NCBI GenBank assembly: GCA_964234715.1
Contig: OZ174282.1
Length of the DNA: 64,000 nt
From: Podarcis melisellensis
Taxonomy: Eukaryota
Direction: 5' to 3' (one strand)
The notes below the pieces were generated by a model, which worked only from the letters and a program-made list of their open reading frames with translations, ran no database searches and was not told the DNA's origin. Each line of letters begins with the position of its first letter. The stretch's first letter is position 1. The translations under genes and the position numbers were made by a program. Below, piece after piece: positions 35,501 through 59,659 of the stretch.

Positions 35501-37399
35501 AGATAATCTGGATCAACTTTACTTGGCCCATCCCTTAACTGTTTGCCAAGTTTTCTCCCTTGCCTTGGGGGAGGAAATCATATTTAAAGTTTGATTTGAT
35601 TGACAAGAATTGCTCCTCCCCCAGAATTGCCTGGCTGGATTGTGCACCTGCTCTATGCAGCATACCTGTGGCCTGGATTGCTTTGGTTGATTGTGGGAGG
35701 AAGCTCCTAGGAGGGTAATTTCTTGGGTAGGAGTGTGAGCTATGTTTGCATGGAAAGTGAATTGCACTCGCCCACTTCTCCCCCCACCCATACAATCCGG
35801 GTTCAGTTGCTGCTTTTAATCACAACCTTGCAGGTTTTGTGGGGAGAAGATGTGTGAATGTGCTGTTGCAGATGAGGCAACTGCTTTTTGCTCTTTGGCC
35901 ATGATTTCCAGATTGTATAATGAGAAAATCTGTGTTTTGTCAAGTGTTCACTGTGGGTTCCTCAAATCAAGGTAGACAATCTTCCCTGAGTGTTTGCCCC
36001 AAGGCTACCAGCAACTCCCTTCACCAATCACAGAGTGTTGCAGGCTGTGCTTTTGGTTTCCAGGGAGAAGCCCAGGACACCTGGTATGAGCTGAAAATAA
36101 TGCCCTCCTACATGACAAGGTGGGCAAAGTTCAATGTAGAAAAGCTTGAAAACTGTGTGACTACAAGGAGTTGGGACTATTGAGCATTAAGGATTCAGGG
36201 CCTCATTGAGGCAAACGCCTGTGCAATGTTTCTCCGGCCAGCTCCTGCAGTGTTGCTAGAGCTAGAAACCTTCAGCTTTGCTTGCTCTTGGTGCTTTGTT
36301 TCTGCAAATAGTCATGTTGCAGGGAAGCCAGATTGGCAGGGAGTGACTTGTTAAAAAGTGTTTGCACATGGTCAGAGGTGCTCCAGCCAGGGGCACTTGC
36401 AGTAAAAACAATTACGCTGTTAAGATACATTGCCCAAACTGAGCCTCTGGCTGAGCCACTGCATGTCACTGCAGGGCTGCTCTTTTCACTCCTTGGGGTG
36501 ATGCTGCCTACATTTCACCCCACCTTTGGTGTGTGTGTGTGTGTGTGGCAGCAGCACGACCAAAATGTGCTGTGATTCATTAATGCAACCCCACCCTAGC
36601 CACAGCTAAAGTGGGAAGCTTGCTGCATTTCCTCTCCATCTGACCCCACTTACCTGTCTCCATTCATATTGCCCTGAAAATTTAAAGGAGGCATAGAGAA
36701 GAATCACAGCTTTTCATGTGAGGCTTTACACCTTACTAACCGAGGCTCACTCTTCGCATGCTTTTCTTTGGAAGTGTATAGTACCATGAGGGCTGGTTGT
36801 GGGTGTGATTTTGTGTGAGAAAGGCCCCCAAAAGAGGAACTCTTTTATTCTTTGTTTCACAGGGCTTAATCCTATAATGTAGTTAGAAGCAGGTTATGTT
36901 GGGTCTTTGCTATGGCCCTCCTAAAATGGTGTGTTGCAAGGGAAATGTCAGGCAAATGCCTTTGAAATCCAACTATGAAACTTTAGCCCTATTTGAAATA
37001 TCCTAGCATACATTTGTGCAGATATTTCCACATAAAGACACATCTTGACCCTGTCCTGCTGTTTTCTCACACGTGCCCACCTGTGCTTTAAAAAAAAATG
37101 GAAGTGAGGATGCTTTCATACACAGTGTTGTCAAAGCTGTAAGGTTGCAGGAGATTTAAATGACCTGCAACTCCTGAGCCAATTGCTGGATAGCAAATAA
37201 GAGCTAAGAAAGAGGGATTTACTCTGCACAGGTACCTCCCCTGCTCCATCATATTAATAAGCTCATCTGCAAGTTATTTCCCCTGCCCTCTCCTGGAAAA
37301 ACCCAACGTCAGCAATTTAGAATAGTGGTTTTGTATGCCTAGGAGGAAGACAGTGGTGAGGTACTATCATTTCCGCCCCCTGGTGAAAATTGCAGCTTT

Positions 37400-39260
37400 G
37401 AGAAGATTGTTTGCTCTGCACTCTGCACATGTTCAAGCGGCGCGTTCTCACGCTCCAACGAAAGGTCTCTACCATCTTTGCGGCTCCAGTGTGCTACTCG
37501 AGGCAGAACCTTATATTTCTCTGGTTTGGGGGACGGCTGTTTGCCGGAGAGAGGGTGGAGAGAGATTCGCTGGCAGTCGTGCGGGCGGTTGCTGATCGCA
37601 AGGCGTCTCTCCCCGCCCCCGCCCCCCAAAAAGTCTTGGCCTCCGCGAACCGGAGTCAGCGGAGGGGCGCGCTGGAGGGAAGCAGGGCGCCGCTGCTCTT
37701 TGTCAAGGGATTTGCGCTGCGACCTCCGCCCCAGGCGAAGGGGGCAGAGGAGGAGGGGGAGACCCAGACAAGGCGGGGGAGGGGTTGTTTCTTCCCTTGA
37801 ACCAGCAAGGTTCCTTTTCTCTCCCGCGGACCAGGCTCAGTGCCCAGCCGCGTTTCCCGCTGCTGAGCGGCCGGGTCCTTGACTGGCGGGGCTGGATTTC
37901 CGCGCCTCGATCCGCCCGTGGCCGTTGGCTTCGCCGAGCCCGCCTGGGGCTCACTAAGGCCGCCCCCATCCTACCTCCTCCCCGCTCCGCCTCGCCTCGC
38001 CTGCTGGTCCCCGCCTCCTTCCTCCCTCCCCTCTCTCCCTCCCCGCCACTCGGCGCGTCCCCTCCCCTCGGAGTTGGCAGCTCGGTGGCCCAGCCGGAAT
38101 CTCGCAGCCGTTGGCGCTGAGGGCCGGAGCTCTCCTGCCGGAGTTGGGCTTCCCGGGAGGGGGGCGGACTGCTGCTTGGTCTCGCCCCGCCGGCCCTCCT
38201 CCAAGGGCGAGCAAGAGGGGCGGCCTGCCAGCCAGCCAGCCGTCGCGCGCTCTGCATCCCTCCATCCGAGCGAGCCTCGCCGCGCAGCCTTTTGTTCCCC
38301 CGGCAAGAAGTTTGTGCGCTGAGAAGGGCCGTGACAGCTGCAGCCCCGTTAGGGAGCACAGAAGAGGGGGCGGCGGCGGCGGTTCCTGCTCCTCGCTTGA
38401 CATGCAGCCCACGGCTCGGCTCGGCGGGGACGGCTGCCGGGGGAGGCGGGCCCCGCTCTTGCCGCCGCCGCGACGCACAAAAGGCTCCAACTAAACTTCC
38501 CTCCTGGAGAGCGAGCAAGCAAGCGGGGAGAGCTCCGTCTGCGCGGCCCGAGCATGGTAGGAGCGGAGAGCCGCCCGGCGAGGACACCGGCAGCCGGCTG
38601 TCCCAGCCCGTCCCCTGCGGGGGCGCCTCTGCTTCTGTCCGCCGGCTGCCGCCGCCCTTGAGCGAGGGAGGAACGCCGAGCAGACTTCGCCACGAGATTC
38701 CCAGACTGCACGGGGAGAGCTGCCCGCCTACCTTCCGGGGCTTTTGCTAGCGGTGCTGAACCAGCTATCCCGCCCGCCGGCCGAGGATGCTGGGCAAACT
38801 GGAGGCGCCCGACGTCGCCCGGCATGAAGAACTTCCTGCGCTGGGACCGCGAGGGATCTCCGCCGCCGGGCGCAGTCCGAGCCAGCCGCGCCGCGCCGAG
38901 GGGCCGACGAAGCAGCCTCTGCAAAGCGCAGTTCTGCCCGGGCATGGAGGCGCGCGGGAGGCCGGGCCTTTGTTCCGCCAGGAGAGCGCGCTCTGCGGCC
39001 GCCTTCCCGAGAGCTGGCCTTTTCCTCGCCGCCGCCGCTGCTGAGCTTCCGACCGGGGCGCCCTCTGGAAGAGGCTTTGTCGGAGCGGGCTGGAAGACTT
39101 GCCTTAAGGAGAGCAGCCCTACCGAGCAACCGGAGGAGGCGGAGGGCTTGCAAATAGCGATCGGCAGAAACGGCTTTATGTGTTGGCCTTGGACTGCTAG
39201 CGTTTCCGCAGGAGCCATGGAATGCCTTGCCCCTTTCAAGGACTTCCACGGTGGAAGATG
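37400..39260 (+). promoter_or_regulatory. Intragenic CpG island; likely internal promoter and 5'UTR of the KIAA0754-type transcript
   Basis: Abrupt very GC- and CpG-rich block with GGGCGG/CCGCCC boxes in an otherwise CpG-depleted intron, directly upstream of the 39493 ATG. Confidence 0.88.
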
Positions 39261-39492
39261 ACTTCTCTCTGGAAAGCTCTGTAACTTCTGTGGAATACAA
39301 AATTGTGGCCTCCCAAGTGGTTATTAGGGATTTTCAAAAGACACCTTGCTCCACCACAATCTATTTCATTTTGCTTTGAATGGAGAGCTTGTGAGGCAGG
39401 GGAGGTTTTTTGTTGTTGTTGTGGGACTCTTCTCTGCGGGGTCCCCCCCCCCATTCTATTCTGTTCTGTTTTCTTTTATTGTTTTGAAAAGT

Positions 39493-42400
39493 ATGGGCAA
39501 GCCACTCAGCAGGCCTGACTGTTTAAGGCAGAGTCCTGCTTGCTTGGGGAAAGGAGAGGATGAGGATGGGTATATAGAAGACTGTTACGTCCCTCAGAGG
39601 TCCATCTACGACACCATGAGGATAAATGAGCAAATTGATCAGGGGTCCAAGACTAGCCAGCCTTCCAAGAGTACCCTTGAAAAAGGGGATGGCAGCACAA
39701 TCTCTAGCAATGGAACTTTAGGGGCACCCAGTGTCTTTGAATCAAAGGCACCTGAGAGCAAAAAGTTAGACGAGAGGGTCATTTTTGATGCCTTGAAACT
39801 TAGTAGTGATGTTTCCAAGTCAGCACCAGCACCCCCAAGGCGGCGGCCAAATCCAGAGAAGAAGGAGAATGTCAACAGGCGGTCATGGAAGTCCTTTATG
39901 CCACCCAATTTCCCTGAGTTTGCTGAGAGAATTGAGGCCTCCTTGAGTGAAGTCTCAGAAGCTGGAGTTTCTAACCCATCCTTGCAAGAGAAGCAGGAGT
40001 CCACTGCCATGTTGGCAGAGAGCCCTAGGCAGTCCGACCAGGGGGAATGCATGTCAGAGCCGTTGACCCTGGAGCACATTCCCAAACTGTCTGGAGTTCC
40101 AGAAATTCAGGAAGTGAAGCAGCTAAGTGAAGCCTTCTGCGAGTTGTCTCAGGATGAGTGCCAGCCTCTTCTGGGACCAGAGGACATGGTAGTTGACCTG
40201 ACCGGCGGCAGGCGGCGGGACCACAGGCTCTCGAGCGCCACGTGGCCAAGGGTGATGAAAAATGCCATCAGAGCAGGCCTTGGCAGTGGGCATCATGACA
40301 CCTTGGAGGCAGACAACACAGACTGTGTCGTAGAAACGGTGCCACTGTCTCCTTGCCTGAGTGAAGAGCTCCTGGACCCAGGAATGAGCATTCTCATCGC
40401 CCCCAACCTCCGGGAAAGGACTGAGTCGGAGCTGAGGTTTGAGGAGGATGAGCGATTGATCATGATGGAGACTGGGGAGGAGTGGGAGGAAGGCTTGCTG
40501 TCAGGGAAGGCTGCTGAGAAAAGAAGTTGTTACTTGACAGATATTTCTGAAGAAAAGGAACAATTAAGTGTTCCAGCCGTGACAGTTACGGAAGCTATAG
40601 AGAGTTTTGCTGGTGTCCAAGGGACCTCTAACCACCCATCTCACTGGCAAGAGCTGTGGGATGACTCACAGCTGCGAGCTGTCAACTCTGCTCCCGTTCC
40701 CCAGGAAACGCACCAAGACTTAAACGCTACTCTTGAGGAGGAGGAGGAGGCTGGTGCCTGCAATGCTGAAGCTGTAGCAGCCGAAGTGGAAGAGGAGGAA
40801 TTTGCTTCTGGCCTAGAAGCCTGTGCCAGCTCTCTTGCCCCAGAGCAGTTCTCTGACACGGATTCTGTGCAGATGTTCCTTGAACTAGAAAAGCTTTGCA
40901 TGCTCGAAGAAGGAGGGGATGGAGTGGCTCCAGGTGATCTGGGAGTGCAGGATGCTAATCAGTGTTCAGAAGGGCTGGACATGCAGAAGGACTTGGCGGG
41001 AGCCTCCCAGCCCTTGACTCACCTTGAAGTCAGCATGGCAGACTCTGCTGTGGTCTCAGATCTGGAGGACTTTGATGCCACATGTGGTTCTCAAGCAGTA
41101 AGTACAGCAGAAGCTACCCTTTCAGAGTGCTACTCTGAACGGGAAACTTCTGGTGACTCTGAAAAGGTGACGTCTTCCAGTCCTCCGCTTGAAAAAGATG
41201 CTGTATCCCAACAATCACTCTCATCCTTAGTTAGTCAGATAGAGGAGTATGGGGCAGAACTGTTGGCAGGTCATGACCCTGCAGAAAGCCAGAGGGTCAA
41301 AGGATTGTTGGACTTTGCCATGGGTGAACCTGTGGCTTCAGTTGATTTCCCTTGCTGTAGAGAACCACCTCCTTGCATCCATGTTCTTGCCATTGGCAGA
41401 GAAACTGAGCAGCAGCAAATGCAGCCTGTCATTTGCTATGAAGCAAAGGAGGTATCCCCGAGCCATGATGAACTTGCCACAACTGCTGAGGAGCTGGACT
41501 CCCAACCAGATTTTGACTTGGCAAAAGAGATGGTGAGCGCTATGGGGAAAGAGCTGCAGGCTTGCGATGAGCTCAACCCATCAGAAAGGACTGACTTCTC
41601 CAACTGGGATGTCCCAGAGCTGGTTTCTGAGGATGAAGTTGCAGAACTGGATAAAGAAAACCTCCTTTGTGGGGGCCATGTTAGTGACATAGAGGATGTA
41701 GATAGTTCCTGGGTGCCTTCACAAAGTGAGTTTGTATTGCGGGACTCTGAGGAGCCTCTAAAACATGTAGGCTCCTCTGAGAACTTGAAGGCTGTGTGTC
41801 AACTTGAGCCTTTAACAAGGCTGCTGTGTGATGGAGAAGTGTCAGCGAGTGCAGCCCTTCTCCAGGAGGAAACACCAGAGGTAGTTGAGCAGGGAGCAGC
41901 AGCAGCAGCCAAAGGCAGCCCAGTGGAAGAGAAGAGATATTGCTTGGAACCTGGAGACTTGGAGTTCCTTTTTGGGCAGAGCAGGGACAGTGAGATAACA
42001 AAGGATGAGGAATATAGTGCCAAGTTTGTGTGTACCAACTCACAAGCTTTTGTTGAAGATTTGTTTGCTGCACAGCCCAGTTCAGAAGACTTGGCTGCCT
42101 CTTTTGGAGAGGAATCTGCTTCTGTCAGTCCCCTCCCTAGTGACAAGGCTCTTGATGCCCCTCCAGATAGCCCAGAGGAGCTTGCTGACCCCTTTCCTTC
42201 TGCTGGAGTGGGGCCTTCCATCACTGATGGTCCAGCAGCTGTAACATGTTCCACCCTGCCTTTGCCATCCTCACTTGCTTCTACCCCAGAAGCAGAAGGG
42301 CCTGTTGTGGATGCTGCCTGCTTATCCAGGTATAAAGAAGTTTGTGGTCAAGATTGTCTTCCAGGAGTCACTTCAGAGCCCAAAGCAGAGGACCTGATAC

Positions 42401-42855
42401 CATTCTTACTAAATGCAGAGGAGATGTCCTCTGCTTCTGTGCCATTCTCCTTGGAAAATATGCCTCTAAGTAGAGAGGAACAGCCTGCTCTGGAAGAGCT
42501 GGCCAATGCCACAATGCCCACCTCCACCAAGGAGCCTGTTCAGGTGGTCCAAGCGATTAAAGGCCTTGCCATCTCTATGCCATTGGGTGCAGATGGTGTG
42601 CCAGAGCCACCAGAAGTTGGTTTCTCTCTGGCACCTGGAGCAGTGTGGGATACAGTCTGCAGCACACCACATCTGCCCTCTTCTGCAGCACCTGAAAGTG
42701 AAGAGGAGGAGCTGACCTCTGCTGTGCCAGACTCAGAAAGTACCTCCTTTTCTTCCCTCGTTGCTGAAGGGCCTCCTGCTGAAACGGATGGATTGGTTCC
42801 AGATAATGAGGTATTTGTTTCCCCTGGTCCCCACACGCTGCCATATCAGACATAA
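39493..42855 (+). CDS. KIAA0754: KIAA0754-homologous ORF: 1106 codons to a donor at 42810, or 1120 aa if read through to TAA; probable alternative first exon of MACF1
   Basis: Uninterrupted ORF starting MGKPLSRPDCLRQSPACLGKGEDEDGYIEDCYVPQRSIYDTMRINEQIDQGSK, recognised as the KIAA0754 N-terminus. Conserved blocks RRSWKSFMPPNFPEFAERIEASLSEVSE, PLSPCLSEELLDP, SDTDSVQMFLELEK. Same intronic position in MACF1 as recalled for human. Confidence 0.92.
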   Translation: MGKPLSRPDCLRQSPACLGKGEDEDGYIEDCYVPQRSIYDTMRINEQIDQGSKTSQPSKSTLEKGDGSTISSNGTLGAPSVFESKAPESKKLDERVIFDALKLSSDVSKSAPAPPRRRPNPEKKENVNRRSWKSFMPPNFPEFAERIEASLSEVSEAGVSNPSLQEKQESTAMLAESPRQSDQGECMSEPLTLEHIPKLSGVPEIQEVKQLSEAFCELSQDECQPLLGPEDMVVDLTGGRRRDHRLSSATWPRVMKNAIRAGLGSGHHDTLEADNTDCVVETVPLSPCLSEELLDPGMSILIAPNLRERTESELRFEEDERLIMMETGEEWEEGLLSGKAAEKRSCYLTDISEEKEQLSVPAVTVTEAIESFAGVQGTSNHPSHWQELWDDSQLRAVNSAPVPQETHQDLNATLEEEEEAGACNAEAVAAEVEEEEFASGLEACASSLAPEQFSDTDSVQMFLELEKLCMLEEGGDGVAPGDLGVQDANQCSEGLDMQKDLAGASQPLTHLEVSMADSAVVSDLEDFDATCGSQAVSTAEATLSECYSERETSGDSEKVTSSSPPLEKDAVSQQSLSSLVSQIEEYGAELLAGHDPAESQRVKGLLDFAMGEPVASVDFPCCREPPPCIHVLAIGRETEQQQMQPVICYEAKEVSPSHDELATTAEELDSQPDFDLAKEMVSAMGKELQACDELNPSERTDFSNWDVPELVSEDEVAELDKENLLCGGHVSDIEDVDSSWVPSQSEFVLRDSEEPLKHVGSSENLKAVCQLEPLTRLLCDGEVSASAALLQEETPEVVEQGAAAAAKGSPVEEKRYCLEPGDLEFLFGQSRDSEITKDEEYSAKFVCTNSQAFVEDLFAAQPSSEDLAASFGEESASVSPLPSDKALDAPPDSPEELADPFPSAGVGPSITDGPAAVTCSTLPLPSSLASTPEAEGPVVDAACLSRYKEVCGQDCLPGVTSEPKAEDLIPFLLNAEEMSSASVPFSLENMPLSREEQPALEELANATMPTSTKEPVQVVQAIKGLAISMPLGADGVPEPPEVGFSLAPGAVWDTVCSTPHLPSSAAPESEEEELTSAVPDSESTSFSSLVAEGPPAETDGLVPDNEVFVSPGPHTLPYQT

Positions 42856-44612
42856 AATTACTTTTTTTGTAGGAAGTGACTTGGGGAGGAAGCGAGGAGT
42901 TAATCCATAGTTGACTGACTGATGTAATTTGGAGTACAAAGCATGCCTGACTTTTTCTTCCTTTTGTTAAAATTTGGGTTCTCCTTCCCTTTGAAAGGGG
43001 GTTACATTTTGTAGGTCTTGATAGAAACAGTGTTGGGTTGGTGGGTTTCTTTTTCTTTTCAGGTGTGGGGAGGGTTTCAAACAAGAACAAACCTGTCATT
43101 ATCTTGCTTACGTAAAAATATTCTTGCCACCACCAATGTCTTGAACTGACTTATTCAAGTAGCATTATGTTCATGCGCTTAGAAGCAAATTATACATTTT
43201 CTTTTGAAAGATTGTGATTAAGTGTGGGTAGCTGCAGAGCTCATAGATGGGAAAATGTGTTGCTAAGAGGGAAATAGTATAAGGCAAATTCCAGCTAACA
43301 ACGTTACATAAATGATAAAAACCAACCAACTGCCTAGTCAAGGTTCTTTCAAATCCATAGAGAAGAAAAGAAGTTGCTGAAAACGTTTTATTTAAATCTC
43401 CAAGTAAAGAAGGGGTTTGGAAAAGAGAAGCTTTTGTGCCAAGTCTGTTTGCAGCACCAAACGTCTATAAAAGGGCATTGTTTTCTTTTGGATACTGATT
43501 TTGACAGTTGTCAACCAAGCTAAGCTAGTTTTTTGTACTTTTTAAACTGTCATGACGTTGGTTTTTTCCCCCTACCCCCCTGCCTAGGAACTTGGCTTGG
43601 TTGCAATTTCTCACGCTTCAGACAGTTGCACATTTGAAAAACAAGAAAAGCAGAAGTAGCCAGAGGCTTGAGAAGGGCTATGATGTAGTGTTCAATTCAC
43701 ATGTGGAAAACAGTCTCCAACTGTGGGCAGAAGGCTGAGTTTTTCTCAGTGAAAAAATGCAGCACCCACAGCCAAGACTGTACAGTTCAGACCTGTAATT
43801 AGGAAGAAAGGTGGGGGGGGGAGCAGGGGATGCCAAGCTAAGCCAAACTGACATGAATTATCGCTCTGGGTTTATTACAGTCTGTCCAGCTGAGTCTGAG
43901 GAGAGAGAGCTATCTGAGGAGAGAGAGCTATTTGATAGAAAACATTATCAGTCCTATGGTGCCCAGAGTGGGAGATATTTGCTCAACACCCCAGGGTCAA
44001 AACAGCCAGGGAATTATCTGGAAGGTGCTCTTAGCTGTTGCCATGGTTGGTTCTACAGGGGAGAAGAGAAGCTATGAGGGGTTATGGGGCATTTCACACA
44101 TTGCCAAACTGTTGTGCTGCTAGGTATGAGATAGGATCTCCCACTTTTTAATATGGTGCAAAGCAGCTGTGAGCCCCCAAACTGGATGGTTGGAACTGCA
44201 CTAGGGAGAGAGTGTTTAGTTGCTGCCACTTACTCGACCATCTCTTGTTTTCCTTATCTAATCCTCCATTCTCACTTTAGCTGTGTGATGATGGGGGAAC
44301 GGGCAAGTACATTAGGCAAGAAGCCATGACTTCTCCTGGCTTTCTGATTGGTGTGTCTGCATGATACATTTATTGCAAGTGTGTGTGTGTTGCATTTGCA
44401 CTTGGATAAAATATAAACCAGCTGTTAGGTAGGAGAAAGAGGTCAGCAGCTTTACCATGAAGAATGGGAACAGGATACTAGAAAAGAGTCTTGAGAGAAG
44501 CATCTTGTAAATGAAAGCCTGGTAGCATCATTAGGAGGGCAGGGAAGCAGAGAATAACAAACAGATGAATTCTGTTTATTTTCTGGGTAATTCTGCAAAA
44601 CTTGCTTCCAAA

Positions 44613-44844
44613 TTCATTCATTCATTCATTCATTCATTCATTCATTACATTTATATCCCACCTTTCTCTAGGAAGCTCAATATGGCCTACAAGCTTCTCC
44701 CCATTTCTTAATCACAACAACCCTGTGAGGTGGGTTAGACTGAGAGTGAGTGGCTGGCCCAAGACCACACCCAGTGAGCATCATGGCTGAGTGGGGATTT
44801 GAAGCCTGATTTCCCAGCACTCTAACCACTACACCACACTGACT
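44613..44844 (-). mobile_element. tRNA-derived SINE (Squam3-like) with (GAAT)n tail
   Basis: CTCTAACCACTACACCACACTG head (reverse complement), ACAACAACCCTGTGAGGTGGGTT core, (ATTC)n at 44613-44646. Confidence 0.75.
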
Positions 44845-47638
44845 CCTGTGAATAGGAACACGGACTGGCATTCTCCACCCCAAACACACGCACATTTCGT
44901 TTCTCTATTGGGCTAACCCAAATGTCACAAAATGGTACAGAAGTTTTTAAGTTCGCCAAAACTTTTCATTGGTCTAGATGGGAAGAAGGTACTTTTGTCA
45001 AGCCATCCATTTCTGCATCTGGTAAGAGTCTTAAGATGAAGAGTGGGAAGAGGTAGACCCCCCCCTTTTCTCCCCTCACATATTTACTGTCTAAAAATGG
45101 CCCTTCCCAGTGTAGCACCATCCAGATCTTTTTGAACTACAGTTTGGCTGTGCTGACTGGGGCTGACGGGAGTTGTAGGACAGTGTGTCTTGAAGGCGCC
45201 ATGTTGGGGAAGGCTGGTGTGAGGAAAAGGGCCGCATGCTGGCCCTCCTATTGCAAGGCAGTTAGTGTCTGTCCTCCCTTTTCTTTTGCCCTCCAGTCTT
45301 TCCTCCTCCTGCTGCTTTTGCTTCTCTGATCAGGGAAAGGTTTGCGCCTTTGTCCAAGTGAGAGCTAGCCAGCCAGTGCTCTGGCATCCTCTCCGCGTTC
45401 TGTATTTGAAGCTCTAAGCTATGCTTCCAAGTATTTTCTGCCGAGGCGGTTGTTAAGGCTGGGTTTTGCGTTTTTAAGCCTCCCCCACTAAACCTGTCTC
45501 TGGTTTCTGGATCATTCCCACCCAAATATGGCAGCTGTTCCTGATTGTGGGTGGGGGTGGGGATTTTGCTTGAACAGAGCAAAATGCTTTGGAGTCCTCT
45601 CCTGTGTTCGTTTTAAAAATAAGTTTTGTATTTGAGGTTATGGCCGGAGCGTGTAGGAAGAGGTGGCGGCATGTCCCTTCAGAGAGCTTGCATGCCTGGC
45701 TTATCGGTCTGGGGTGTGTGTGTGTGTCTGTGTGTCTGGCTGCTGTTGCATGTAGGAGGGCCCTTTCCATTTATATCTATCTATAAAATATATAATATAA
45801 AATAAGCAGTCCCAGCAGAAGGGCTGGGTGAGTCGTTTGCTGTTATGTTGCCATCAATCCTTCTTATGGCAGAATGGCTCTATAGCTCTGGACAGCATCT
45901 TCATTTAATATCCTGGCATGTTCCCATTTCTGGAGACAAGTTGCTGAACGTTGCAAGGGAGGAAAACATTTCCCCCTGACTTTTCCAAGCTTAGATTCTT
46001 GCTGCCTTGCATCGCAGCTGTCTCGCTCAGGGCCCTCCGTAAAACATAGGGAAGTTTGGGCACAGTTTTGTTTGGAAGTGGCTGCTAAATCTTTAGCTGG
46101 CTGCAAAGCTTTAGAAATGTGTTGCTGTTCCTCAATTTCTTATGAACAGAGCAATTTGTTGCTTCGGTTTGGTGGTTTTTGCTGCTGATTTACTTTTCAT
46201 GTGCCACTTTCCCCTGGGAGCAAAGGGCTCCTTAAAGATCACCAAAAACTACCTCGCCAGGTGTTTTGGACTACAACTCCCATCATCCCTCACCATTGTC
46301 TATGTTGGCAGGAGTGGGAGTCCAGAGCACCTGGGGAGGCTGTGAATGAGTATGAGCGTGCTTTTTCTTTCTCCCACTCCTGCTGCTGACATTTATCATG
46401 ACACCCCTATGAGGTAGGGCAAACTGACAAATAGTGGTGATTCAGGGCTATTGGATGAATAAGAGACTTCGTCCTGGGAGTCTTGTGTTCTAGCAATTAC
46501 TCAGCAGCTTTAAAAAGACCCCAGCAACCAGGTACTAAGAAATTGCGGGGGGGGGAGGGGCATGTTGCGTAATGCACTGCTTGAAATTTGAATGTTTTTT
46601 TCAGCTCTGGACCTTAATACATTTGGTCATGGTTAAATGCCCTATGGGATTTAATCACACATCTAATTTTTTTGTTATAAAACAAAAGTCTGTAGTTTGA
46701 AGTAATTGTGTTTAAATGCCACGGCAGATGAATTCTACCACTTACACCTGCACAAATCATGCATTTTAATATGATATTTACAGAATTGCTGTGTGTTGAC
46801 TTGATCTTTTTGGAAAGGCACCTGATAAATCTTGTTAATAAAAAAAGGGTTCTCCCAATGAAGCATGAGAAAGAGGCTCTTCTGGGTGGCGTATCTTGGC
46901 AGGATCCCAGCAAGACAAAGCACTCTGGTATATCTGAACCAATGTCTGTAGCTTTCGAGTAACACAAAACTCCTTGCCTAGACCAGATGTGCGGAACCTC
47001 AAGTTGTTGCTGAAATACAACAACTCCCACCATCCTTGGTCTTCAGCCATGCTTTCTGGAGCTGATGGGAGTTGCAGTTTAGTAACATCTGGAGGGCGAA
47101 AGGTTCCTTGCACCTGGTCTCAGTGATATGCCAATAGATGTTGGCCCAATAAGAAGAAGCAATAAAGACAACTTTTTGTTTTAAAATGGAGGTTCAAAGG
47201 AAGACTGCCAGGGTGTAGGAAGATGCCTAATCTTAAGTCAGACTATTGGTCCATATAGTCCAGGAGTATCTACACAACTGGCAGCAGGTCTCTAAGGATT
47301 CCTTCCCACCCCTACTTGGATACAGTGAATGTATTTATTCTGTCTTCTGTCCCAAGCAGAAAACATTTGCTGCCTCTGAAGTAAGGTGTGCACAGAACTG
47401 TCTCTTGCAGTGCATGATGGCAGCCTTCGTGCAAAGAGTAAGAACCAGTCCAGGGGCTGGATGCAGCTGGTGTGGCTTCGAAGGGCATGGTGGGATGGGA
47501 GGCTCTTCTGCCCTTTTTCTCGCCTCCTGAGGAGAGGAGTTTGCTCAAGGGCAGCTACCCTTTGAGTGTCACTCTCAGTGTGGCCTCTGACCACTTCGGG
47601 TGCTCTTCACGCAGCTGTCTTGCAGGGCAGTGGGGAGG

Positions 47639-47641
<3 letters not shown>

Positions 47642-47686
<45 letters not shown>
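47642..47686. repeat. (AAT)n microsatellite
   Basis: Directly visible. Confidence 0.95.
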
Positions 47687-47688
<2 letters not shown>

Positions 47689-50626
47689 TTATACCCTATC
47701 CATCCAGTAGGGTTTTCCCAGTCACTCTGAGGAGCTCCCAACAGACTAAATGCAATGCCTCTTCCTTTAATTTGCCACCCTGGGCAACTGCCCTGTTTTC
47801 CTCCTGTAAATACAGTGTGCCCGGAGATGCTGGGGATTGAATCTAGGAGCTTCTGCATGCAAAGCAGTTAATTATAAGAAGAGCCTTGATAGGCCAGAGG
47901 AACTGACTAATCCAGTATCCTGTTCTCCGGCTGGCCAGCAAGATGGGAAGCCTGGACCTGAATGCAGCGATGGAGGCAGAGCATAGCCATTGTGGCTAAT
48001 TGCCATTGATAGCCTTCTCCTCTGTGAATTTGTCTAATCTTTTTAAAGCCATCTAGGTTGGTGACTATTCCTGCATCTTGTGATAGGTGCTCTTCCATGC
48101 AGCTACAGCCCTTCCCATAAGTTGAATCAATGTAAGCTGAAGGAGAAGGGACTGTGTGCATTTTAAAAGGAAGTTCTGGAAGAGAAAGGGCAGCAAGAGG
48201 AGCGGGAGGCAGCTGGGAAGAGAATGAGGTGCTAGACCAATCAAATGATATGGTCAGGTGGAGGGGAGGGGAAGGCGCTGGAATGACAGTTGATGTTTCT
48301 CCAGGACAGCATCAAACCTTCAGGTGTTTATTGACTCACATAACTCCTTTGTGTTCATTAAATAAAAAAATAGTAAATCTAGCCCTCTATAAAGAACCTT
48401 GAAGATCACAGTGAAAGTTTTGCGCCAGACATGGAAGTGAGGCAGAAGGGATTGGGATGCAGGTTTAGTAAACTCATCCTTTGCTCTGTCCCTACAAAAG
48501 GAAGTTGCAGCATAAAGTATATCCTCCTTAATTTCCATCTGCCAGCTTGGCTTTGGGCCTCTGCTGTTTAGCAACCATCCAGGGCAAGCAGTCCTATGTC
48601 ATCTGCCACTGTGGCTGCTGTTGATGGTTCCTTGGAGTTTGCCCAGCTCTGTGTGAAGCAGGCCACTGTTCTTCCCATTCCACAGGGGGGGAACCAAGTG
48701 ACATGAAAGAGCAACATGCCGTGCGCTCTATCATGGTATATTGTCAGAACTCCCAGAAACACACAGGGCTTGTCGTCGTCACTGAGATCAGTTTACATGT
48801 GCAGCTGGGAGTCAACAAGCTGAGAATCAGGCAGTCCAAAACATATCTAAACTGGTCCTTAGTGGGCTAAGGGTCTCTTTCCAGGGATGCTTTAGCTAGA
48901 CAGTGAGCAGTTTGGATGAGATTGCCTTCCTGAGCCTTGAATAGGCAGTGCAAATTCCAACATGGAAGCATCTTTTGTGTAGGAATTTGTGTTCATATGA
49001 ATCTCCCTTGATTCCAGCCATTGGATTCTTCCCTACCTGTGATCATATGTATTCCTGGGAGTTGCAGAGGTTTGGCGTTTCACGTGCCCACATGGCTAAA
49101 TGGCCTCTTCTGCTGTAGTGTTCCCAAGTGAAGGAGCTACCTGCCTTCCCCTTTTTCTTAATTCCTCCTCTGCTACCATTTCCCCTTCACAGGAGCCTCC
49201 CTTTCCTGGGAAGGAGAAATGGCAGCTCTTTGTCAGAGTCTTGTCTGTCATCAGGTACTTTTCAGAAGATCCAGGGCTCCCTGATAGGAACAGCCTTCTC
49301 CTGATTTTATCTCGCACCTTCTTCCCTCCCTTTATTTCTAAACCTTGCTTTGCCTTATGGAGCTTTTTTTCTCTCACAAGGTCGTGGGAAGATCTTGGAG
49401 ATTGAGCAATTGCACTCATCTTTCTTTTGTCTTTTTGAGTGATAATGCAGCAAACTTTCCATATGTTTATGATACCTTGTGCATGTGGAAGGCAGTGTAT
49501 AGGAAGCAGTTGTGCAGCTGGTGTGAACATGCTGTGGAATGTGGTGCTCTCTCCAGCGGTGTTGAGAGAGGGAGGTGGATAAGTTTTTCTCCAAGAGAGA
49601 GAGTGAATTATGCCTGTCAACCTTACAGAGGAGTGTGGGTGTGTAGCTAATCTGACTTTTCTGGTGCAGGAGGTGGTGGTGGAGAGAGATGTAGCTGCTG
49701 GCCACTTTGCCTTCTAGGGCCACATGTTGTGTTTCAGTACAGCCTCATTTGTTGCCATGACTTTTCCTCCCAGCTCTAAATGCAACAGAGCTAACACTCT
49801 TCTTGTCTATCAGGTTGGCTGGCTGGTTTTTACAGAGATACCCTTTATAGCTCAGCTGCATTTTCTTTCTTTTTGCTTGTGTTTAAAACCTTTTTCCAGA
49901 AGTGAAACAAAACTCCAGATTCCTCTCTGCAAATACCTTTATATCCTCAGCTCAAGATACTGATAGCCAATTAGTAAGCTAGTCCATTCTCATTAACTTG
50001 CTATCTCTGCAAGCTTCATTCATGGGTTGGTGTGATCTGTAAATGAAGTCTGGCATTCATATGTAGGAGATGCTCTCAGCCACAGCTGGAGACAGAATGA
50101 AATGGTTAGCCAGTAGCCTCCAGGGATTGCCCTAAGGCAGCCTTCATCAACTGGGTGTGCGCCAGATATTTTCTACTGCAACTCGCATCAGCTCAGCCAG
50201 CACTGGCAATATTCAGGAATGATGGGAATTGTTGTCAAAAAGTCTTGGGGGTACAAGGCAGGCCGAGGGTGCCCGAAAGTACTGAGCAGCTTCTTGCCAG
50301 TCTGGTGTTAGATTTAGATCAATGTTGTGTGCTGACAGAGACCTGGATTCAAATCCCTCCATAGCCTTGATGTTCACTGACAGCCAGTCATCTTGTCCTT
50401 GGGACAGTAAGAATCTCCACTAATGCATCATCTATCTCACAAGTTTGTTGTTAGGATAAAATTGGAGTGGGGCTAACTATGTACAGTATGCTGCCCTGAG
50501 TTCCCAGCCTGATAAAACTATAGCAAATAAAAAGGCTAAGTAAGACAACTGATGATTTGTGATGGAGGCTGACATCCTTTGTCTCTGTCTCTCCCTCCCC
50601 CATCCCCCGCTTCCATGTTTCCTCAG

Positions 50627-50788
50627 ACATTCCAGAAGGAGCAAGTTGACCCCCTTCAGGCAAAACTGCAGCAAGTCAATGGGCTCGGACAGGGACTCAT
50701 CCAGAGTGCGGGAAAGAATTGTGACGTCCAGGGCTTGGAACATGACATGGAGGACATCAACACCCGCTGGAACACCCTCAACAAGAAG
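50627..50788 (+). CDS. MACF1: MACF1 coding exon ([30 protein letters not shown]...NTLNKK)
   Basis: Strong pyrimidine tract, cctcag acceptor; AAG|gtgagc donor; 162 nt, phase 0-0. Confidence 0.96.
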
Positions 50789-52179: not shown

Positions 52180-52350
52180 GTGGCGCAGAGGATTGCACAG
52201 CTGCAGGAAGCCCTGTTGCATTGTGGGAAGTTCCAGGATGCCTTGGAGCCTTTGCTCAGCTGGTTGGCCGACACGGAGGAGCTCATCTCCAACCAGAAGC
52301 CACCATCTGCTGAATATAAAGTAGTGAAGGCTCAGATTCAGGAGCAAAAG
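52180..52350 (+). CDS. MACF1: MACF1 coding exon ([19 protein letters not shown]...QIQEQK)
   Basis: aatgtag acceptor (poor pyrimidine tract); AAG|gtgagg donor; 171 nt. Confidence 0.96.
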
Positions 52351-52869
52351 GTGAGGAGTTGGTGGCCGGGGGACCTTGAACTCACAGAGCACAGCTGGCT
52401 GGCAGCACCCACCATGGCCTCTCTGTGCTTTGGGCACTCAGCTCCACCAGCAGCCCCAGGTATCCCCAGTTGACAGGAAAGGTTTCACTTGCTTTCCTTT
52501 TGGCAGACAGCTTCTACCTACCACCTGTGCCATGCCAAATAAGCAGGAGAAGGAAGGAAAGAGGTTGGTAGTTGGTGAGCTTTGGAGAACAGAGAGGGGA
52601 CAATATAGGGGACAGACACCCAACCTTTAGTGTGGAGACAGCCCCCACTAGGAATGGCATAAAAGGCAGCCTTTGTTGGGTGAGTTCTGGGAACTTGAAG
52701 TTGATGGTGGTGAGTGAAAGGGGAGAAAGAGGGCACAGTTAAAAGTGGTAGGAGGGAAATGTGAGTTTAGCAGAGGGAGAACCCTGGGGACTGTTGGCCT
52801 TACTGAAAGCAGAAGGGTAATTCCTTCCTTAGCAAAATAATTATCACTTTCTAATACTTTATTCCAAAG

Positions 52870-53036
52870 CTGCTCCAGCGTCTCCTGGATGACCGGAAAG
52901 CTACTGTCGAGATGATCCAAGCAGAGGGTGGGAGAATAGCTCAGTCTGCTGAACCAGCAGACAGGGAGAAGATAGTTGCCCAACTGGAGAGCCTTGGAAG
53001 CCACTGGGCAGGACTTCTCAGCAAAGCTACAGCCAG
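52870..53036 (+). CDS. MACF1: MACF1 coding exon ([25 protein letters not shown]...SKATA-R)
   Basis: ttccaaag acceptor (AAG type); AG|gtaagc donor; 167 nt, phase 0 to 2. Confidence 0.92.
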
Positions 53037-54834
53037 GTAAGCTACAAGGCCTGTAGGATGCAAGCTTGTCTGTTGTAATTTAGCACTGAAGCGAGAGAAA
53101 GTAACCTTTGCTTTGCGCTCTCCCTGCAAAGTATACTTTGATGTTCTTTTGGTAAGCTGTCTTATACTGAGTCGGACCATTGGTCCATCTAGCTCAGCAC
53201 AGGCTACTCTGATTGGCAGCAGCTCTCCAGGGTTTCAGGCAGGGAGCCTTTCCCAGCCCTACCTGGAGATGCTGCTGGGGGCTGGATCCCTTGGGGCTTC
53301 TGCATGCACAGCAGATACTCTGCCATTGAGCTGTGGCCCTTTGCTCTGGTAACCCTGCTGTTTCATAACACAAGTTATTTTATGAACTGCGACTACCTGT
53401 GCATTGCACACAATAACTTTGCAAAACAAGCTGTTAAAGATGCCGTCTCATGCCTGTGCTCTGAATGAAATCACTCTGAACTTCTGAGCCATATGGCTAG
53501 GACATTGCAACTGAGTGTGGTTAGCAGGACTGAAGAATACAAACTGTGTCCGCAGGATGGGATGCACTACTTGCAGGAGAGTCTCTTGCTTGTAAAACTC
53601 ACAAAAAAACCCTCTTGATCCTGTGAGTCCCAGAGCACCATGAGCAGCACATGTGGAACATGCTTCTGTGCCACACTATTTCTTTCTTTTTTAAAATATT
53701 TATCATCTGCCCTTCACTCGAAGGTGCCAAGATAGAAATATGTGCAGTATAAACCAAAACCAAACTATAAGATTAAATCAGCGTAAAACAAAAATACAGA
53801 ATTCAGATACCAATAAAACCAGCAGTGGTAGCAGGTAACCTTTGGCCATCCAGGGCCAGTCCAGGATGTTTTAATGTCTGTGGAGGGCAGTCCTCAAGAC
53901 CTCTCTTGCAGATGTAAGAAAAAAGGGAAGGTCCCCTTTCAATGAATGGTAGCTGTGCAAGAACAGATAACAGCTGTGGTTCACTTCAGAGGAGGCAGTC
54001 AGTGCAGGAGAACTTTATGTTAGTGGATTTTGACCTGTTCATCAGCTCTGTGTTACTTTCTGCTGCCCTTTAGCTTACCCCCAAGCTGCTACCTCACCCT
54101 CCTTCTTTCAAGTACTTGGGGTTGGGATGGAGTGTTTCTTCCAAACTCAGTTTATATTGGCACACCTGTGGGCTCATCATTACACATGACTGCATGCATA
54201 CCGCTTTCCCACATATGTGAAGCAACCCACAGACCAAAAAAAAAGGTCTAAGGAACCATGATCTGGGTATAAAGAGCTGTAGGTTCCCTCCCTCTGTCCC
54301 TTGAAGTTTCTGCTTTGCTTTGGGGAGGGGGCTGTGTGCGCGAGAGAGAGAAGCTTTTCTGCACAGCTCTGGAATTAGATGGAAGTGTAAAATCCAGGGA
54401 AAGGGTTATCATTAATATTTTTTTAAACCTGGCAGTTGCATTCCAGCAACTCCACAGAGAATCAAGTGCAACATCTGTGAAAATGGCCTATATCAGCAAT
54501 TTCTTCAAGCTGTATGTCTCTCCTCCCCCACCCCGTCTTGGCTTTCCCACATTTCCTAGACAGGTTTCATTTACATGGAGAAGGGGGAACCCCACTCCTC
54601 CTTAGCCCCACCATGTCTAAACATGAGATTTCAGATCATCAAATCTTTTGCAGGGGGCTACAAAAATTACCAATATTTTCACTGAACCCACAATTCCCTT
54701 CTTGGTCAATCATCACCAATTTAGGCGACATCAGTGTATATATCATTAAGGTTTTGGGGGTTGTTTTTGTTTTTGCTGTTGTTTTGTTTTGTTTTGCTTT
54801 GCTTTGCTTTGCTTCATGCATCTATCACTTTATT

Positions 54835-55335
54835 CATATATTCATTGAACTGCATTTCTCCTCTTGTTACCCCCTGCCCTGTTTTGGAGACATCCTTTTG
54901 GACCTCTTCACAGCCCACTTGGTTGTTCATCATACTGAATACTTTGGTGTCATCCACAAACTTTGTCAGCTCCCTTCTCACTCCTGTCTCCAGACCGTTC
55001 CTGAACAAGTTCAGGGGCACCATCGGCTCCAATGCACAGATCCTTCAGGAACTTTACTGCGTGCTTCCTTCCTTTCATTGTGAGAACTGTCTGTTTATTC
55101 CCACACTCTGTTTCCTGTTCTTTAACCAGCTGCTGATCCTTAAGAGGATCTTTACTTTCACCCTGTGACTGCTGAGTTTATTCAGAAGTGTTTGGGGACA
55201 GGGACCTTGTTAAAAACTTTTAGGGAGCTCAACTATGCAGTGTCTGCCAGACTACATGTTTCAGCAATCTTATTGGCACTCCAAATCTTATTGGCACTCT
55301 CGAACTCCAAAAGGTTGATGAGGCAGGCTCTTGAT
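54835..55335 (-). mobile_element. CR1 LINE reverse-transcriptase remnant (degenerate)
   Basis: ORF 54814..55032 (-) LNLFRNGLETGVRRELTKFVDDTKVFSMM...CEEVQKDVSK resembles the CR1 RT FINDL..KFADDTKL..LQKDL region. Confidence 0.85.
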
Positions 55336-55703
55336 ACATTAATCCTGTCTTCAAAAAAGGGGGGTGGAGTTAATGACCCTGGAGGCTCTTGCCCATCCTT
55401 TGCCAAGATGATGCCCTCCAGATGTTGACTGGGGCTGATGGGAGTAGTAGTCCAAAACATCTGGATGACATCATCTTGGCGAAGACTGTTCCAGCCAGTC
55501 CTGGAAGTCTCTTAAAATGCTTTCTAGCAGAATCCCTGGTGCAAAAGCTGAACCTGGTTATCTGCTCAACTTTCTCAGGATAAATACTCTGGGTGCTCAT
55601 TTCATTCTTTGTTATTGCAGCAATGGCAAAGTAGCCTCATCTTCTTCCTCGTCCCGCCCCCCCCCCCATTGTTGCTGATGGATTTGTTTTTTTCTTGCCA
55701 CAG

Positions 55704-55863
55704 GCAAAACCAGCTGGAGGAGATCTTGGTTTTGGCCAAGCAGTTCCACGAGACATCAGAGCCCATCTCTGACTGGCTGTCGGTGACTGAGAAGAAACTG
55801 GCCAACTCGGAGCCCATTGGGACTCAGACGGCCAAGATCCAGCAGCAGATAAGCCGGCATAAG
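55704..55863 (+). CDS. MACF1: MACF1 coding exon ([17 protein letters not shown]...QQQISRHK)
   Basis: ccacag acceptor; AAG|gtgggc donor; 160 nt. Confidence 0.95.
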
Positions 55864-56847
55864 GTGGGCGAAGGGTTGCCAAGGAATTGCGCAATGTGGG
55901 GGTGACGGGGGAGCACTGTGCGGTAGGCACTTCAGTAAGAATAGCTGCTGCTGTAGAACCTGGGTACCTGAATAAGATGGGGGCGGGGGGAGGTTGGAAA
56001 CATGCATGTCATAACGGAACAATACTTAAGCCAAGTTGAGTTGGTTGGAATTCAGGATGAAGATTCTCATGGTTTGTATCGAAGCAAAATGCAAGACAAG
56101 ACTGCCAGTGACTACTACCCATGATGACTTACGTTCTGCTTTCGCTGTCAGACACAGTATACCCCTGAATAGCAGGTGCGGGAATCAGAGACAGGTAGAA
56201 TGCCGATACACTTGGGTCCTGCTTGCGGACTTCCTACAGGCATTCGTTTGGCCAGTGTAAGAGCAGGATACTGATCTATTGGACTAATCCAGCAGCAGGG
56301 TTGTTCTTAGTTTTTAACTTTAGTATTTCCTAGGGTATTACCCATATCACTAAATCCTAGAATCCTGCACTTGGTGCAATCCTAGATGGGTCTGCTTGGA
56401 ATAAGTTCCATTGGGTTTAGTGGGACATACTCCCAGCTAATTGTGTATAGGATTGCTGGTCTCTGGGTAGGAAGAATCCTGGCTCATTAGAAGGAAATTG
56501 TGTGGGAGATACACCCCACCACACACACCTTTCCCAAATTCAGTAACTTTTCCTCTTTAAGCTATGAAAATAGCAGCCACAGCTATAACTGTTCATAAGA
56601 CCTGGCCTCCAGAGAAGAATGAAACAAAACTCCCATCTCTCATTTTTCTTTATTTAAACAATTTATTTCATATATGTTATTGCCCTCGTGGGTGGATATT
56701 TTTACTTTGAGTTTGCATGATCATCAGACACACTTATTTCTCAGTTTTGTTTTAGATTTGTTTCCCGTTTATTCCATTTTCAGTCATAAGTTTCTGTCTG
56801 CTTGTTTTGTGTTCCCCCTTCTCTTAAACCATCTCACGGATCTCCAG

Positions 56848-57174
56848 GCCCTCGATGAGGAGATAGAGAGTCATGGCTCAGCTGTGGCTCTGGCGGTCAA
56901 CACTGGACAGTCCCTGGCCTCCTTGAGCTGTCAGGCTGAGCAGGCCTCGCTGGCTGAGAAGCTTGACCTGCTTGAGTCCCGGTATGCAGAGGTTTGCGAC
57001 CGGTGCGGCCGGAAGGCTGCCCTTCTTGACCAGGCCTTGTCCAACGCCCGGCTCTTTGGGGAGGACGAGGTGGAGGTGCTCAACTGGCTGGCTGAGGTTG
57101 AGGACAAGCTCAGCTCAGTGGCCGTCAAGGATTACAAGCGGGACATCCTGCAGAGGCAGCATGCTGACCACCTG
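56848..57174 (+). CDS. MACF1: MACF1 327-nt symmetric (0-0) exon, 109 aa, about one spectrin repeat (ALDEEIESH...HADHL); probable cassette exon
   Basis: tctccag acceptor; CTG|gtactg donor; contains RLFGEDEVEVLNWLAEVEDKL. Confidence 0.94.
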
Positions 57175-57204
57175 GTACTGACTCCTTTTCCCATCTTTCA
57201 TGAT

Positions 57205-57205
<1 letters not shown>

Positions 57206-57259
<54 letters not shown>
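57206..57259. repeat. (TTA)n microsatellite flanked by a ~27-bp direct repeat
   Basis: TTTTCCCATCTT(T/C)CATGATGTATTATT at ~57186 and ~57261. Confidence 0.9.
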
Positions 57260-57261
<2 letters not shown>

Positions 57262-57928
57262 TTTCCCATCTTCCATGATGTATTATTCTTCTTCTTACCT
57301 TTTCCTTTGTTTCTCTTGCTTTGAGTCTTTTGATTTTGATCTGGGCCATTAATATCTCCCTAGAACACCAGCCCCACCCTTGCTGCTGCCCCATACCACC
57401 ACACAAACCGGCGTTATTGCTGTGCCAAAGGGAAAAAGAGAGAGAGAATGATGACCAACCCTTGTCCCAGTTAAGCCTTTTAGAAGGTTGCCACCCTCTA
57501 CTTAAAGCAGCCCTTCCTAAAGGCGCTCCCCATAGGTTTTTGACTACAGCTCCCATCAGCCCCATGATCCTGGGGTTGATGGGGTTTGTAGTCCAGAACA
57601 TTTGGACTTGGTTAGGAAAGGCTGGTGTAAGTATTCCTCCTAGCTTGATGCAGTGGTGGTCTGCCTAGGACTCTCCCTCCTCTTCTGTTTGGTAGAAATA
57701 GTGAGCATCATCAATGCCCTGCCTTCCTTAGGCTTCAGGCTGCTTCTGTGTCCCCTCCCAGGGGCTTCCTGTGTGGAAGGGAGCCACAGGTGTCTCTTGG
57801 GTGCCGCCTTTACTCTGTCAATGTGCTGGTGTTGTCTGAGCCCCAGTGGGGGAAACTTGTTTTGGTCAAAGAGGAGCCTCTCCAGGGGAACTTGCCTTTG
57901 ACACAAGGTTTTTTCCCCACCTGCCTAG

Positions 57929-58013
57929 GCCTTGAATGATGAGATTGTGAACCGCAAGAAGAATGTAGACCAGGCCATTAAGAACGGGCAGGCCCTTCTG
58001 AAGCAAACCACAG
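57929..58013 (+). CDS. MACF1: MACF1 coding exon (ALNDEIVNRKKNVDQAIKNGQALLKQTT-G)
   Basis: gcctag acceptor; G|gtaagg donor; 85 nt. Confidence 0.95.
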
Positions 58014-58457
58014 GTAAGGCTAACCAACCTATTGCACTCCCCACAATCCTTCCTGTCATTCTTCATTGACTTCTCTGTGCCAATGGCTGCAGAACATAGT
58101 ACTCCCCCCCCCCCCCCAAAAAAAGATTCACCCACTTCATTTCTTATTTTCTTATAAAGGGTTGCTTCAGGCAAACAGGAGTGGGGTTGAAAGCAGGGGC
58201 TTTAAATCCCAAGTATTTGCTGCTTTTTGCTTAGGAAGGCTTGTCATTTTCTAGAACATTAAGTATAGAAATTGTTTTATTGCTTTTAGCTTATTGAGTC
58301 TATAACATGTGGGGAGTTAATCTTATTTTATTCTACTTCGGTAGCTTTTGTTTGAGAAGTAGTTTCTAAGCCTGCAGATAAAGAGGCAAAACAAAAGAAG
58401 TCTCTAAACCAAATGACTAGAGTTTGCTGCAGCTAAACACTTGGTGGCTCCCTGCAG

Positions 58458-58699
58458 GGGAAGAAGTGCTGCTCATCCAGGAGAAGCTGGACGGCATCAA
58501 GACGCGCTACTCGGATATCACCACAGCCAGCTCAAAGGCTCTCCGCACTCTGGAGCAGGCCCGCCAGCTGGCCACCAAGTTCCAGTCCACGCACGAGGAG
58601 CTGACAGACTGGATGGGTCTGGTGGAAGAGGAGCTGACGTCGGGTGGAGGGCACTCTCCTGTCGGGGAGCAGATCCCTCAGTTCCAGCAGAGGCAGAAG
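58458..58699 (+). CDS. MACF1: MACF1 coding exon (EEVLLIQEKLDGIKTRY...QFQQRQK)
   Basis: cctgcag acceptor; AAG|gtcagg donor; 242 nt. Confidence 0.95.
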
Positions 58700-59452: not shown

Positions 59453-59659
59453 GAACTGAAGAAGGAGGTGATGGAGCACAGGCTTATCCTGGATACTGTG
59501 AACGAAGTCAGCCGTGCCCTCCTGGAGCTGGTGCCCTGGCGTGCCCGCGAAGGGCTGGATAAGTTGGTTTCGGATACTAATGAGCGCTACAAGATGATCA
59601 GTGACACCATCAAGCAAAGAGTGGAAGAAATAGATGCTGCTATACAGAGGTCCCAGCAG
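59453..59659 (+). CDS. MACF1: MACF1 coding exon ([14 protein letters not shown]...AAIQRSQQ)
   Basis: ttttccag acceptor; CAG|gtagag donor; 207 nt. Confidence 0.96.

Follow-up and report, generated by a model that had tools for sequence, protein, structure and literature searches.

An alternative first exon of MACF1 with its own CpG-island promoter region in Podarcis melisellensis, probably spliced to the shared rod exons

MACF1 (ACF7) has been studied almost wholly as an actin-microtubule cross-linker, and the closest described counterpart of the element considered here is the database entry MACF1, isoforms 6/7 (UniProt O94854), formerly KIAA0754. The mouse protein of 1115 amino acids, NP_001161390, is listed in UniProt as 'Isoform 7 of MACF1, isoforms 6/7', and KIAA0754 has been given as 'NM_015038 exon 1, KIAA0754/MACF1' (PMC4450850). 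A rod peptide, residues 5336-5348 of a protein of 7388 amino acids, has been assigned to both Q9UPN3 and O94854 (PMC13167194); therefore, the O94854 entry includes rod sequence. Databases already curate two products, one long and spliced, the other short and made by read-through, and the isoform is real and not new. KIAA0754 is named in 36 papers, which, as examined, give it in variant or expression lists only, with no study of the spliced isoform found, and a literature search for an internal MACF1 promoter returned nothing relevant. Here, we describe a stretch of 64,000 nucleotides (nt) of the contig OZ174282.1 of the lizard Podarcis melisellensis (assembly GCA_964234715.1), free of any N and hereafter called the window, in which a large open reading frame (ORF) lying in a MACF1 intron is the lizard orthologue of the MACF1 isoforms 6/7 of UniProt and RefSeq.

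We propose, with a probability of about 0.9, that the exon extending from 38.0 kb to position 42810 is an internal-promoter first exon spliced to position 50627, giving a headless form of MACF1, i.e., one in which a large N-terminal sequence of its own (the head, in what follows) replaces the canonical one. In this scheme, a CpG-island promoter located in a 32.9-kb MACF1 intron would start the transcription at approximately 38.0-38.4 kb, and the first exon, of 4.4-4.8 kb, would hold a leader of ~1.4 kb followed by an ORF of 1106 codons. The phase-0 donor at 42810 would then be joined to the phase-0 acceptor at 50627, which the canonical transcript would also use, and the transcript would run on through the shared exons as far as the usual 3' end of MACF1. 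The product would consist of a head of ~1100 amino acids and a C-terminal part of MACF1 of ~2,100-2,170 residues, for a total of ~3,200-3,300 amino acids. This C-terminal part would comprise the later spectrin repeats, then the EF-hands, the GAR/GAS2 domain and the tail encoded outside the window, and the head would meet the rod midway through a spectrin repeat, leaving the first repeat incomplete.

The probable internal first exon and its junction in congener RNA

The elements of the alternative transcript are the following:

37250-39250, no strand: CpG island and internal promoter region within the MACF1 intron, from base composition and RNA starts
38048-42810, + strand: alternative first exon, 5' end approximate; at least 4.4 kb, probably ~4.8 kb
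38048-39492, + strand: 5' leader of ~1.4 kb, holding 10 upstream ATGs; no acceptor use of the AG at 39490-39491
39346-42855, + strand: ORF, with its first ATG at 39493 and an in-frame stop directly 5' at 39343-39345
39493-42810, + strand: head-coding part of the exon, 1106 amino acids, acidic, starting MGKPLSRPDC
42808-42816, + strand: splice donor GAG/GTATTT, phase 0, cut at 42810/42811, used in congener RNA and conserved
42811-42855, + strand: read-through tail of 14 codons and TAA (42853-42855), unsupported in the lizard data
42811-50626, + strand: intron of 7816 nt removed from the alternative transcript, from a congener contig and comparative loci
50627-50788, + strand: shared acceptor exon, ending ...NKK, phase 0 at both ends, from sequence, spectrin profile and contig match

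A preliminary description, made from the letters of this DNA, had placed an ATG at 39493, 1106 codons, a phase-0 GAG/GTATTT at 42810/42811 and a tail of 14 codons, and all of these are found in the sequence. The ATG stands in a good start context (AAAGTATGG, with A at -3 and G at +4), and its distance to the donor, (42810-39493+1)/3, corresponds to exactly 1106 codons (phase 0); past the donor, the peptide reads VFVSPGPHTLPYQT, 14 codons before TAA. The CpG island attributed to the ORF is also present, with a GC content of 0.57-0.72 and a CpG observed/expected ratio of 0.74-0.96 over 37250-39250, against ~0.1 in both flanks. The head exon is in the sense of MACF1 and lies in the intron directly before the shared exon, whose predicted start at 50627 in phase 0 holds. 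This shared exon is flanked by an acceptor rated good, tttcctcag/ACATTCCAG (ACA TTC CAG), and by the donor AAG/gtgagc, and its product matches positions 47-94 of 105 of the Pfam Spectrin profile, that is, the second half of a repeat. The match stays below the Pfam cut-off because it covers half a repeat only.

The expression of this region was followed in RNA from a congener, ~2% diverged, compared over 37800-43799 of the window (6000 nt). In run X2, contig record 3 (4439 nt, depth 55) aligns without a break over 38415-42810 and goes on past 42810 with 28 letters, ACGTTCCAGAAGGAGCAAGTTGACCCAC, which are unmatched in 37800-43799. In the window these 28 trailing letters match solely at 50627-50654, with 2 mismatches, both at synonymous third codon positions, and when the tail was shuffled none of the shuffles matched the window. 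The contig omits 7816 nt exactly from GT to AG, i.e., it carries the junction 42810>50627 that the preliminary description had predicted. This exact GT...AG skip indicates an RNA origin of the contig as well as the existence of the junction. The contig breaks off after 28 nt of the shared exon, at the point where a graph built from 31-mers has to fork between two isoforms. On its 5' side, it is continuous across 39491, with a leader of at least 1078 nt extending into the CpG island, and contig record 1 of the same run covers 38048-38427. The contig passes unbroken over the AG at 39490-39491, so that this site does not serve for splicing into the ORF exon.

The sense-strand reads and contigs start within the CpG island, at ~38000-38430, and the contig depth climbs from 12.6 to 55 at ~38415, a step which hints at several start sites. 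All 98 raw reads from runs X23, X24 and X21 fall inside 38000-42810; none lies in 37800-37999 and none in 42811-43799 (three runs, depth 1-4). With read-through as abundant as the exon, the 989 nt past the donor should hold ~20 reads, and from the zero observed the read-through is placed below roughly 15%, as a rough upper bound. In most stranded libraries, a first mate on the - strand corresponds to RNA of the + strand. In the paired runs X23 and X24, the exon reads have their first mate on the - strand, except for a few X24 pairs at 38600-38999. These few pairs are reversed (first mate on the + strand, depth 0.24-1.18), which suggests weak antisense or divergent transcription inside the CpG island.

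Conservation, head-bearing gene models and flanking exons

The locus was compared with those of the skink Lerista, the boa Candoia, the loggerhead turtle Caretta, the kiwi Apteryx and Mus caroli. The donor reads GAG/GTATTTG in Lerista, Candoia, Caretta and Apteryx and GAG/GTAATTG in Mus caroli, in phase 0 in all of them; the donor and phase on which the preliminary description relied are thus kept in four other sauropsids and in mouse. The gene layout of the lizard is found again in Candoia, Caretta, Apteryx and Mus caroli, and the next coding block, xFQKEQVDP(L/I), lies 3.2-6.8 kb downstream with a good acceptor in 4/5 loci, no counterpart of the shared exon being found in the skink locus within the 10 kb examined. 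In sauropsids, the final 24 nt of the head exon (GATGGATTGGTTCCAGATAATGAG, for DGLVPDNE) hardly vary, and the sequence of a coelacanth model closes with ...ATEGLVPDNE. The read-through tails of the compared species measure 4-25 codons and are unconserved past the first few donor-adjacent codons. Within the intron, ~10 nt (42811-42820) are conserved in squamates, turtle and bird, as GTATTTGTT / GTATTTGCT. This conservation exceeds the needs of the splice consensus, and the segment may be a regulatory element for the weak donor, as judged from the alignment.

Orthologues of the head are present across vertebrates (249 proteins at E<=0.001), the best matches being squamate (63%), followed by turtle, bird, mammal, coelacanth and frog. 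Their source names, such as 'KIAA0754 homolog' and 'MACF1, isoforms 6/7', are in agreement with the tie between KIAA0754 and MACF1 stated in the preliminary description. The ratio of non-synonymous to synonymous substitution rates (dN/dS) is 0.30-0.34 for the entire ORF and 0.01-0.06 in the first 150 codons, and these values, together with the vertebrate-wide orthologues, place the ORF far beyond chance. Among squamates, the last third of the ORF has a dN/dS of 0.6-1.0 and is nearly neutral. That such a nearly neutral frame stays open for ~1100 codons up to a conserved donor and closes soon after in every lineage is what would be expected of a product read across the splice. Compared with mouse, the head is 40% identical over its whole length and ~90% identical over the first 80 residues, with a strongly diverged middle and end, and residues 1-146 hold long runs of invariant alignment columns. 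The isoform appears ancient, with strong constraint on the two ends of its head exon.

The head starts with the consensus MGKPLS(R/K)PxC (coding region 39493-39545), in which M1, G2, K3, P4, L5, S6, P8 and C10 are, like C17, invariant in 20/20 sequences from hagfish to mouse. MGxxxS/T is the N-myristoylation consensus, and nearby cysteines suit S-acylation. The start of the head fits a predicted N-myristoylation and S-acylation signal. No family was matched in a Pfam scan of the head. AlphaFold2, applied to residues 1-360 with an alignment of 20 sequences, gives a mean predicted local distance difference test score (pLDDT) of 46.7 and no globular fold, with four short helices at 38-49, 94-105, 141-148 and 311-330. 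The head is thus predicted to be mostly disordered and acidic over its ~1100 amino acids, and it contains short islands that are highly conserved. Myristoylated and acylated, it would make a membrane-attached form that would bind microtubules and not actin.

Several gene models of other vertebrates contain the head joined to the rod. The turkey models P0038 and P0130 read ...GFVPDNE directly into the homologue of the shared exon, and the head is joined to the homologous exon in the catfish P0143 (3242 amino acids), in the cyprinodontiforms P0179 (Crenichthys, 3300 amino acids) and P0141 and in the hagfish P0159 (1899 amino acids). In P0143 and P0179, 2157-2168 residues follow the junction, with 11-13 spectrin matches, EF-hands and GAS2/GAR; neither of these full-length teleost models has a CH or a plakin domain, in agreement with the form devoid of both that the preliminary description had inferred. 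In the longest mammalian isoform, the junction falls near residue 5280, which leaves a comparable length of about 2,100 residues (numbering of PMC13167194). An exhaustive HMMER search of 1.84 billion proteins, with the first 480 residues of the head as the query, gave 54 representative proteins; in 50 of them, the matched part of the head keeps its own position, counted from residue 1 of the protein, and in the other 4 it is shifted by 13-234 residues. Nearly all representatives thus have the head at the N-terminus, and this, together with a contig continuous from the CpG island into the ORF and with the absence of coverage upstream of ~38000, bears out the alternative first exon put forward earlier.

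The preliminary description had also raised a paralogous exon in DST. No such paralogue was found by the HMMER protein search, in which the tetrapod matches are all MACF1 and from which an unannotated exon would escape. The weaker matches that were looked up are nearly all teleost duplicates, e.g., Si:ch73-305o9.3. A 'MACF1-like' model of Arapaima gigas (P0182 / P0157) has the same head and a rod 55% identical to that of catfish MACF1. P0182 has 2237 amino acids in total and contains EF-hand and GAS2 domains; its junction of head and rod lies much further downstream. The head-bearing gene of Arapaima may have arisen as a teleost-type MACF1 duplicate, or it may be DST-like and possess a head exon independently of MACF1.

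The canonical upstream exon was located by reading ORF fragments, the cross-species conservation of the 10-kb flanks giving no useful signal for it. Since it ends at 17706, the host intron is 17707-50626, of 32.9 kb, and two phase-0 donors (17706 and 42810) compete for one acceptor, 50627. On the 3' side, a tblastn comparison with the head-bearing turkey model P0130 finds its rod again, in the same order, in eleven exons at 50.6-63.1 kb. The bounds of the ten that lie at 52180-63133 are limits of protein matches, not splice sites, and are to be read as approximate in the list below.

16204-17706, + strand: last canonical MACF1 rod exon upstream, ending ...QQLADFK/gtaagg, phase 0; 5' end approximate
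52180-52353, + strand: rod exon
52867-53037, + strand: rod exon
55693-55866, + strand: rod exon
56845-57183, + strand: rod exon
57929-58018, + strand: rod exon
58457-58699, + strand: rod exon
59450-59665, + strand: rod exon
60701-60823, + strand: rod exon
61909-62058, + strand: rod exon
62906-63133, + strand: rod exon

Copies of a repeat resembling short interspersed nuclear elements are scattered in the MACF1 introns between 44.6 and 62.1 kb, in both orientations (e.g., 47000-47126, 55389-55460, 57430-57601 and 61622-61700), and their ORF fragments have common motifs, such as ...GADGSCS... and MF(W/L)TTTPIS...

Alternative readings of the locus

Several points speak against the spliced internal first exon. 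The junction is carried by a single assembled contig, from a single run of a sister species, and the library type of X2 was guessed as RNA, the contig being taken as such because 7.8 kb are skipped exactly at GT...AG. The depth of the raw reads, 1-4, is too low for loose ends at 42810 to be listed. The contig holds just 28 nt of the shared exon, the continuity to the EF-hand/GAR end in this lineage being taken from fish models that are automatic predictions, and the support is at the level of RNA and sequence. The donor itself is off consensus at +4 to +6 (TTT vs AGT). Moreover, a leader of ~1.4 kb with 10 upstream ATGs is unusual for an efficiently translated mRNA and should make the main ORF harder to translate, unless the bulk of the transcripts begins nearer to it; the upstream ORFs of this leader reach 145 codons, and several of them share the main frame and are closed by the stops at 39259-39261 and 39343-39345. 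The upstream ATGs and the sub-consensus, conserved donor suggest a regulated, possibly low or tissue-restricted output.

In the classical view of KIAA0754, the ORF is a stand-alone nested single-exon gene, whose transcript would read through to the TAA at 42853-42855 and be polyadenylated in the intron, with a protein of ~1120 amino acids as the main product or a co-product. This annotation is common, from the mouse RefSeq NP_001161390 to dozens of 'KIAA0754 homolog' models of 1000-1400 amino acids, and the departure of the donor from consensus at +4 to +6 would favor it. However, it has to be set against the 0/98 reads in 42811-43799, which keep read-through below ~15%, and against the lack of a polyadenylation signal: the absence of a canonical one near the ORF end, reported in the preliminary description, was verified and extended to 3 kb (42800-46000), where neither AATAAA nor ATTAAA occurs and weak variants only, such as AGTAAA at 43403, are found. 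Tails that are unconserved past the first few donor-adjacent codons, and an ORF open exactly to the donor in every lineage despite its nearly neutral last third, argue in the same direction. We regard a stand-alone gene as improbable, and the second, stand-alone read-through product envisaged earlier at this locus is unsupported in the lizard RNA for the same reasons of reads, signal and tail. A minor read-through product may go undetected at this read depth.

The pyrimidine tract and the AG found directly before the ATG raise another possibility: the ORF could belong to full-length MACF1 as an internal cassette exon, with the AG at 39490-39491 as its acceptor. Leader, frame and head position all contradict this reading: the RNA contig passes straight through 39491 into the CpG island; after the phase-0 exon end at 17706, an entry at 39492 reads TAT GGG... 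and meets a TGA after 8 codons; an in-frame stop stands at 39343-39345; and the head is N-terminal in nearly all of the 54 representatives. The empty interval at 37800-37999 also counts against the cassette exon, to which we give hardly any credit. As for the junction, a single contig could be an assembly artefact, since Logan contigs can be chimeric at shared words, and a chimeric de Bruijn contig would then join two unrelated transcripts. The break of such a chimera would have to coincide exactly with a GT donor and with an AG acceptor, each of phase 0; the two sides have no common 31-mer, and the contig end 28 nt into the shared exon fits the branching of a k=31 graph between isoforms. As the same join is found in independent gene models of four distant lineages, among them turkey, teleosts and hagfish, we consider an artefact very unlikely.

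With the internal first exon spliced to 50627 as the preferred reading, a wider one can be put forward tentatively, and we hold it to be possible and rather doubtful. In it, the head-bearing form would be an ancient and functionally separate spectraplakin, predating the split between hagfish and jawed vertebrates, in which a myristoylated and palmitoylated, disordered head and ~2,150 amino acids of rod, EF-hands and GAR would make a membrane-microtubule tether that does not bind actin, and the stand-alone KIAA0754 of the databases would be an unselected read-through by-product.

Comparison with known systems

With MACF1 isoforms 6/7 (UniProt O94854), the lizard locus has in common an orthologous head, the same position in MACF1, a phase-0 donor ...E/GTA and the same downstream exon. 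The long spliced form of this entry is found here in congener RNA; its short read-through form, curated for mouse, is unsupported in the lizard RNA at a read depth of 1-4. To this known duality, our data add that the donor and the last codons are conserved despite the nearly neutral third that precedes them, and that the short read-through product is undetectable here at this depth.

In comparison with canonical MACF1/ACF7 (MACF1a and MACF1b; UniProt isoforms 1/2/3/5), all exons from 50627 onward are common to both forms, and the EF-hands, the GAR domain and the microtubule-binding C-terminal tail would also be common; for the EF-hands and GAR of the lizard isoform, this is deduced from the head-bearing teleost models P0143 and P0179. 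The head isoform has its own promoter and differs by the absence of the CH domains, the plakin domain, the plakin repeats and the early spectrin repeats, the N-terminal part being replaced by a disordered, acidic and probably lipid-anchored head. Without CH domains, it therefore cannot cross-link actin to microtubules via the known actin-binding site. Of the features of the spectraplakin family (MACF1/DST/Shot), the spectrin rod is present and the N-terminal CH and plakin hallmarks are absent. A conserved form devoid of the actin-binding and plakin regions would serve a function other than the cross-linking for which MACF1 is known, and it bears on the reading of MACF1 knock-outs and disease variants: N-terminal knock-outs of MACF1 would spare it, and a coding exon of MACF1 would be the actual site of variants listed under 'KIAA0754'.

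The organization of the locus also resembles that of dystrophin, whose short forms Dp71, Dp116, Dp140 and Dp260 arise from intronic promoters, with unique first exons placed on common 3' exons, so that the actin-binding head is lost and the C-terminal interaction domains are kept. The same internal-promoter logic is found in both genes. The unique first exons of dystrophin code for few residues, whereas the head exon of MACF1 codes for ~1100 residues with modules conserved across vertebrates.

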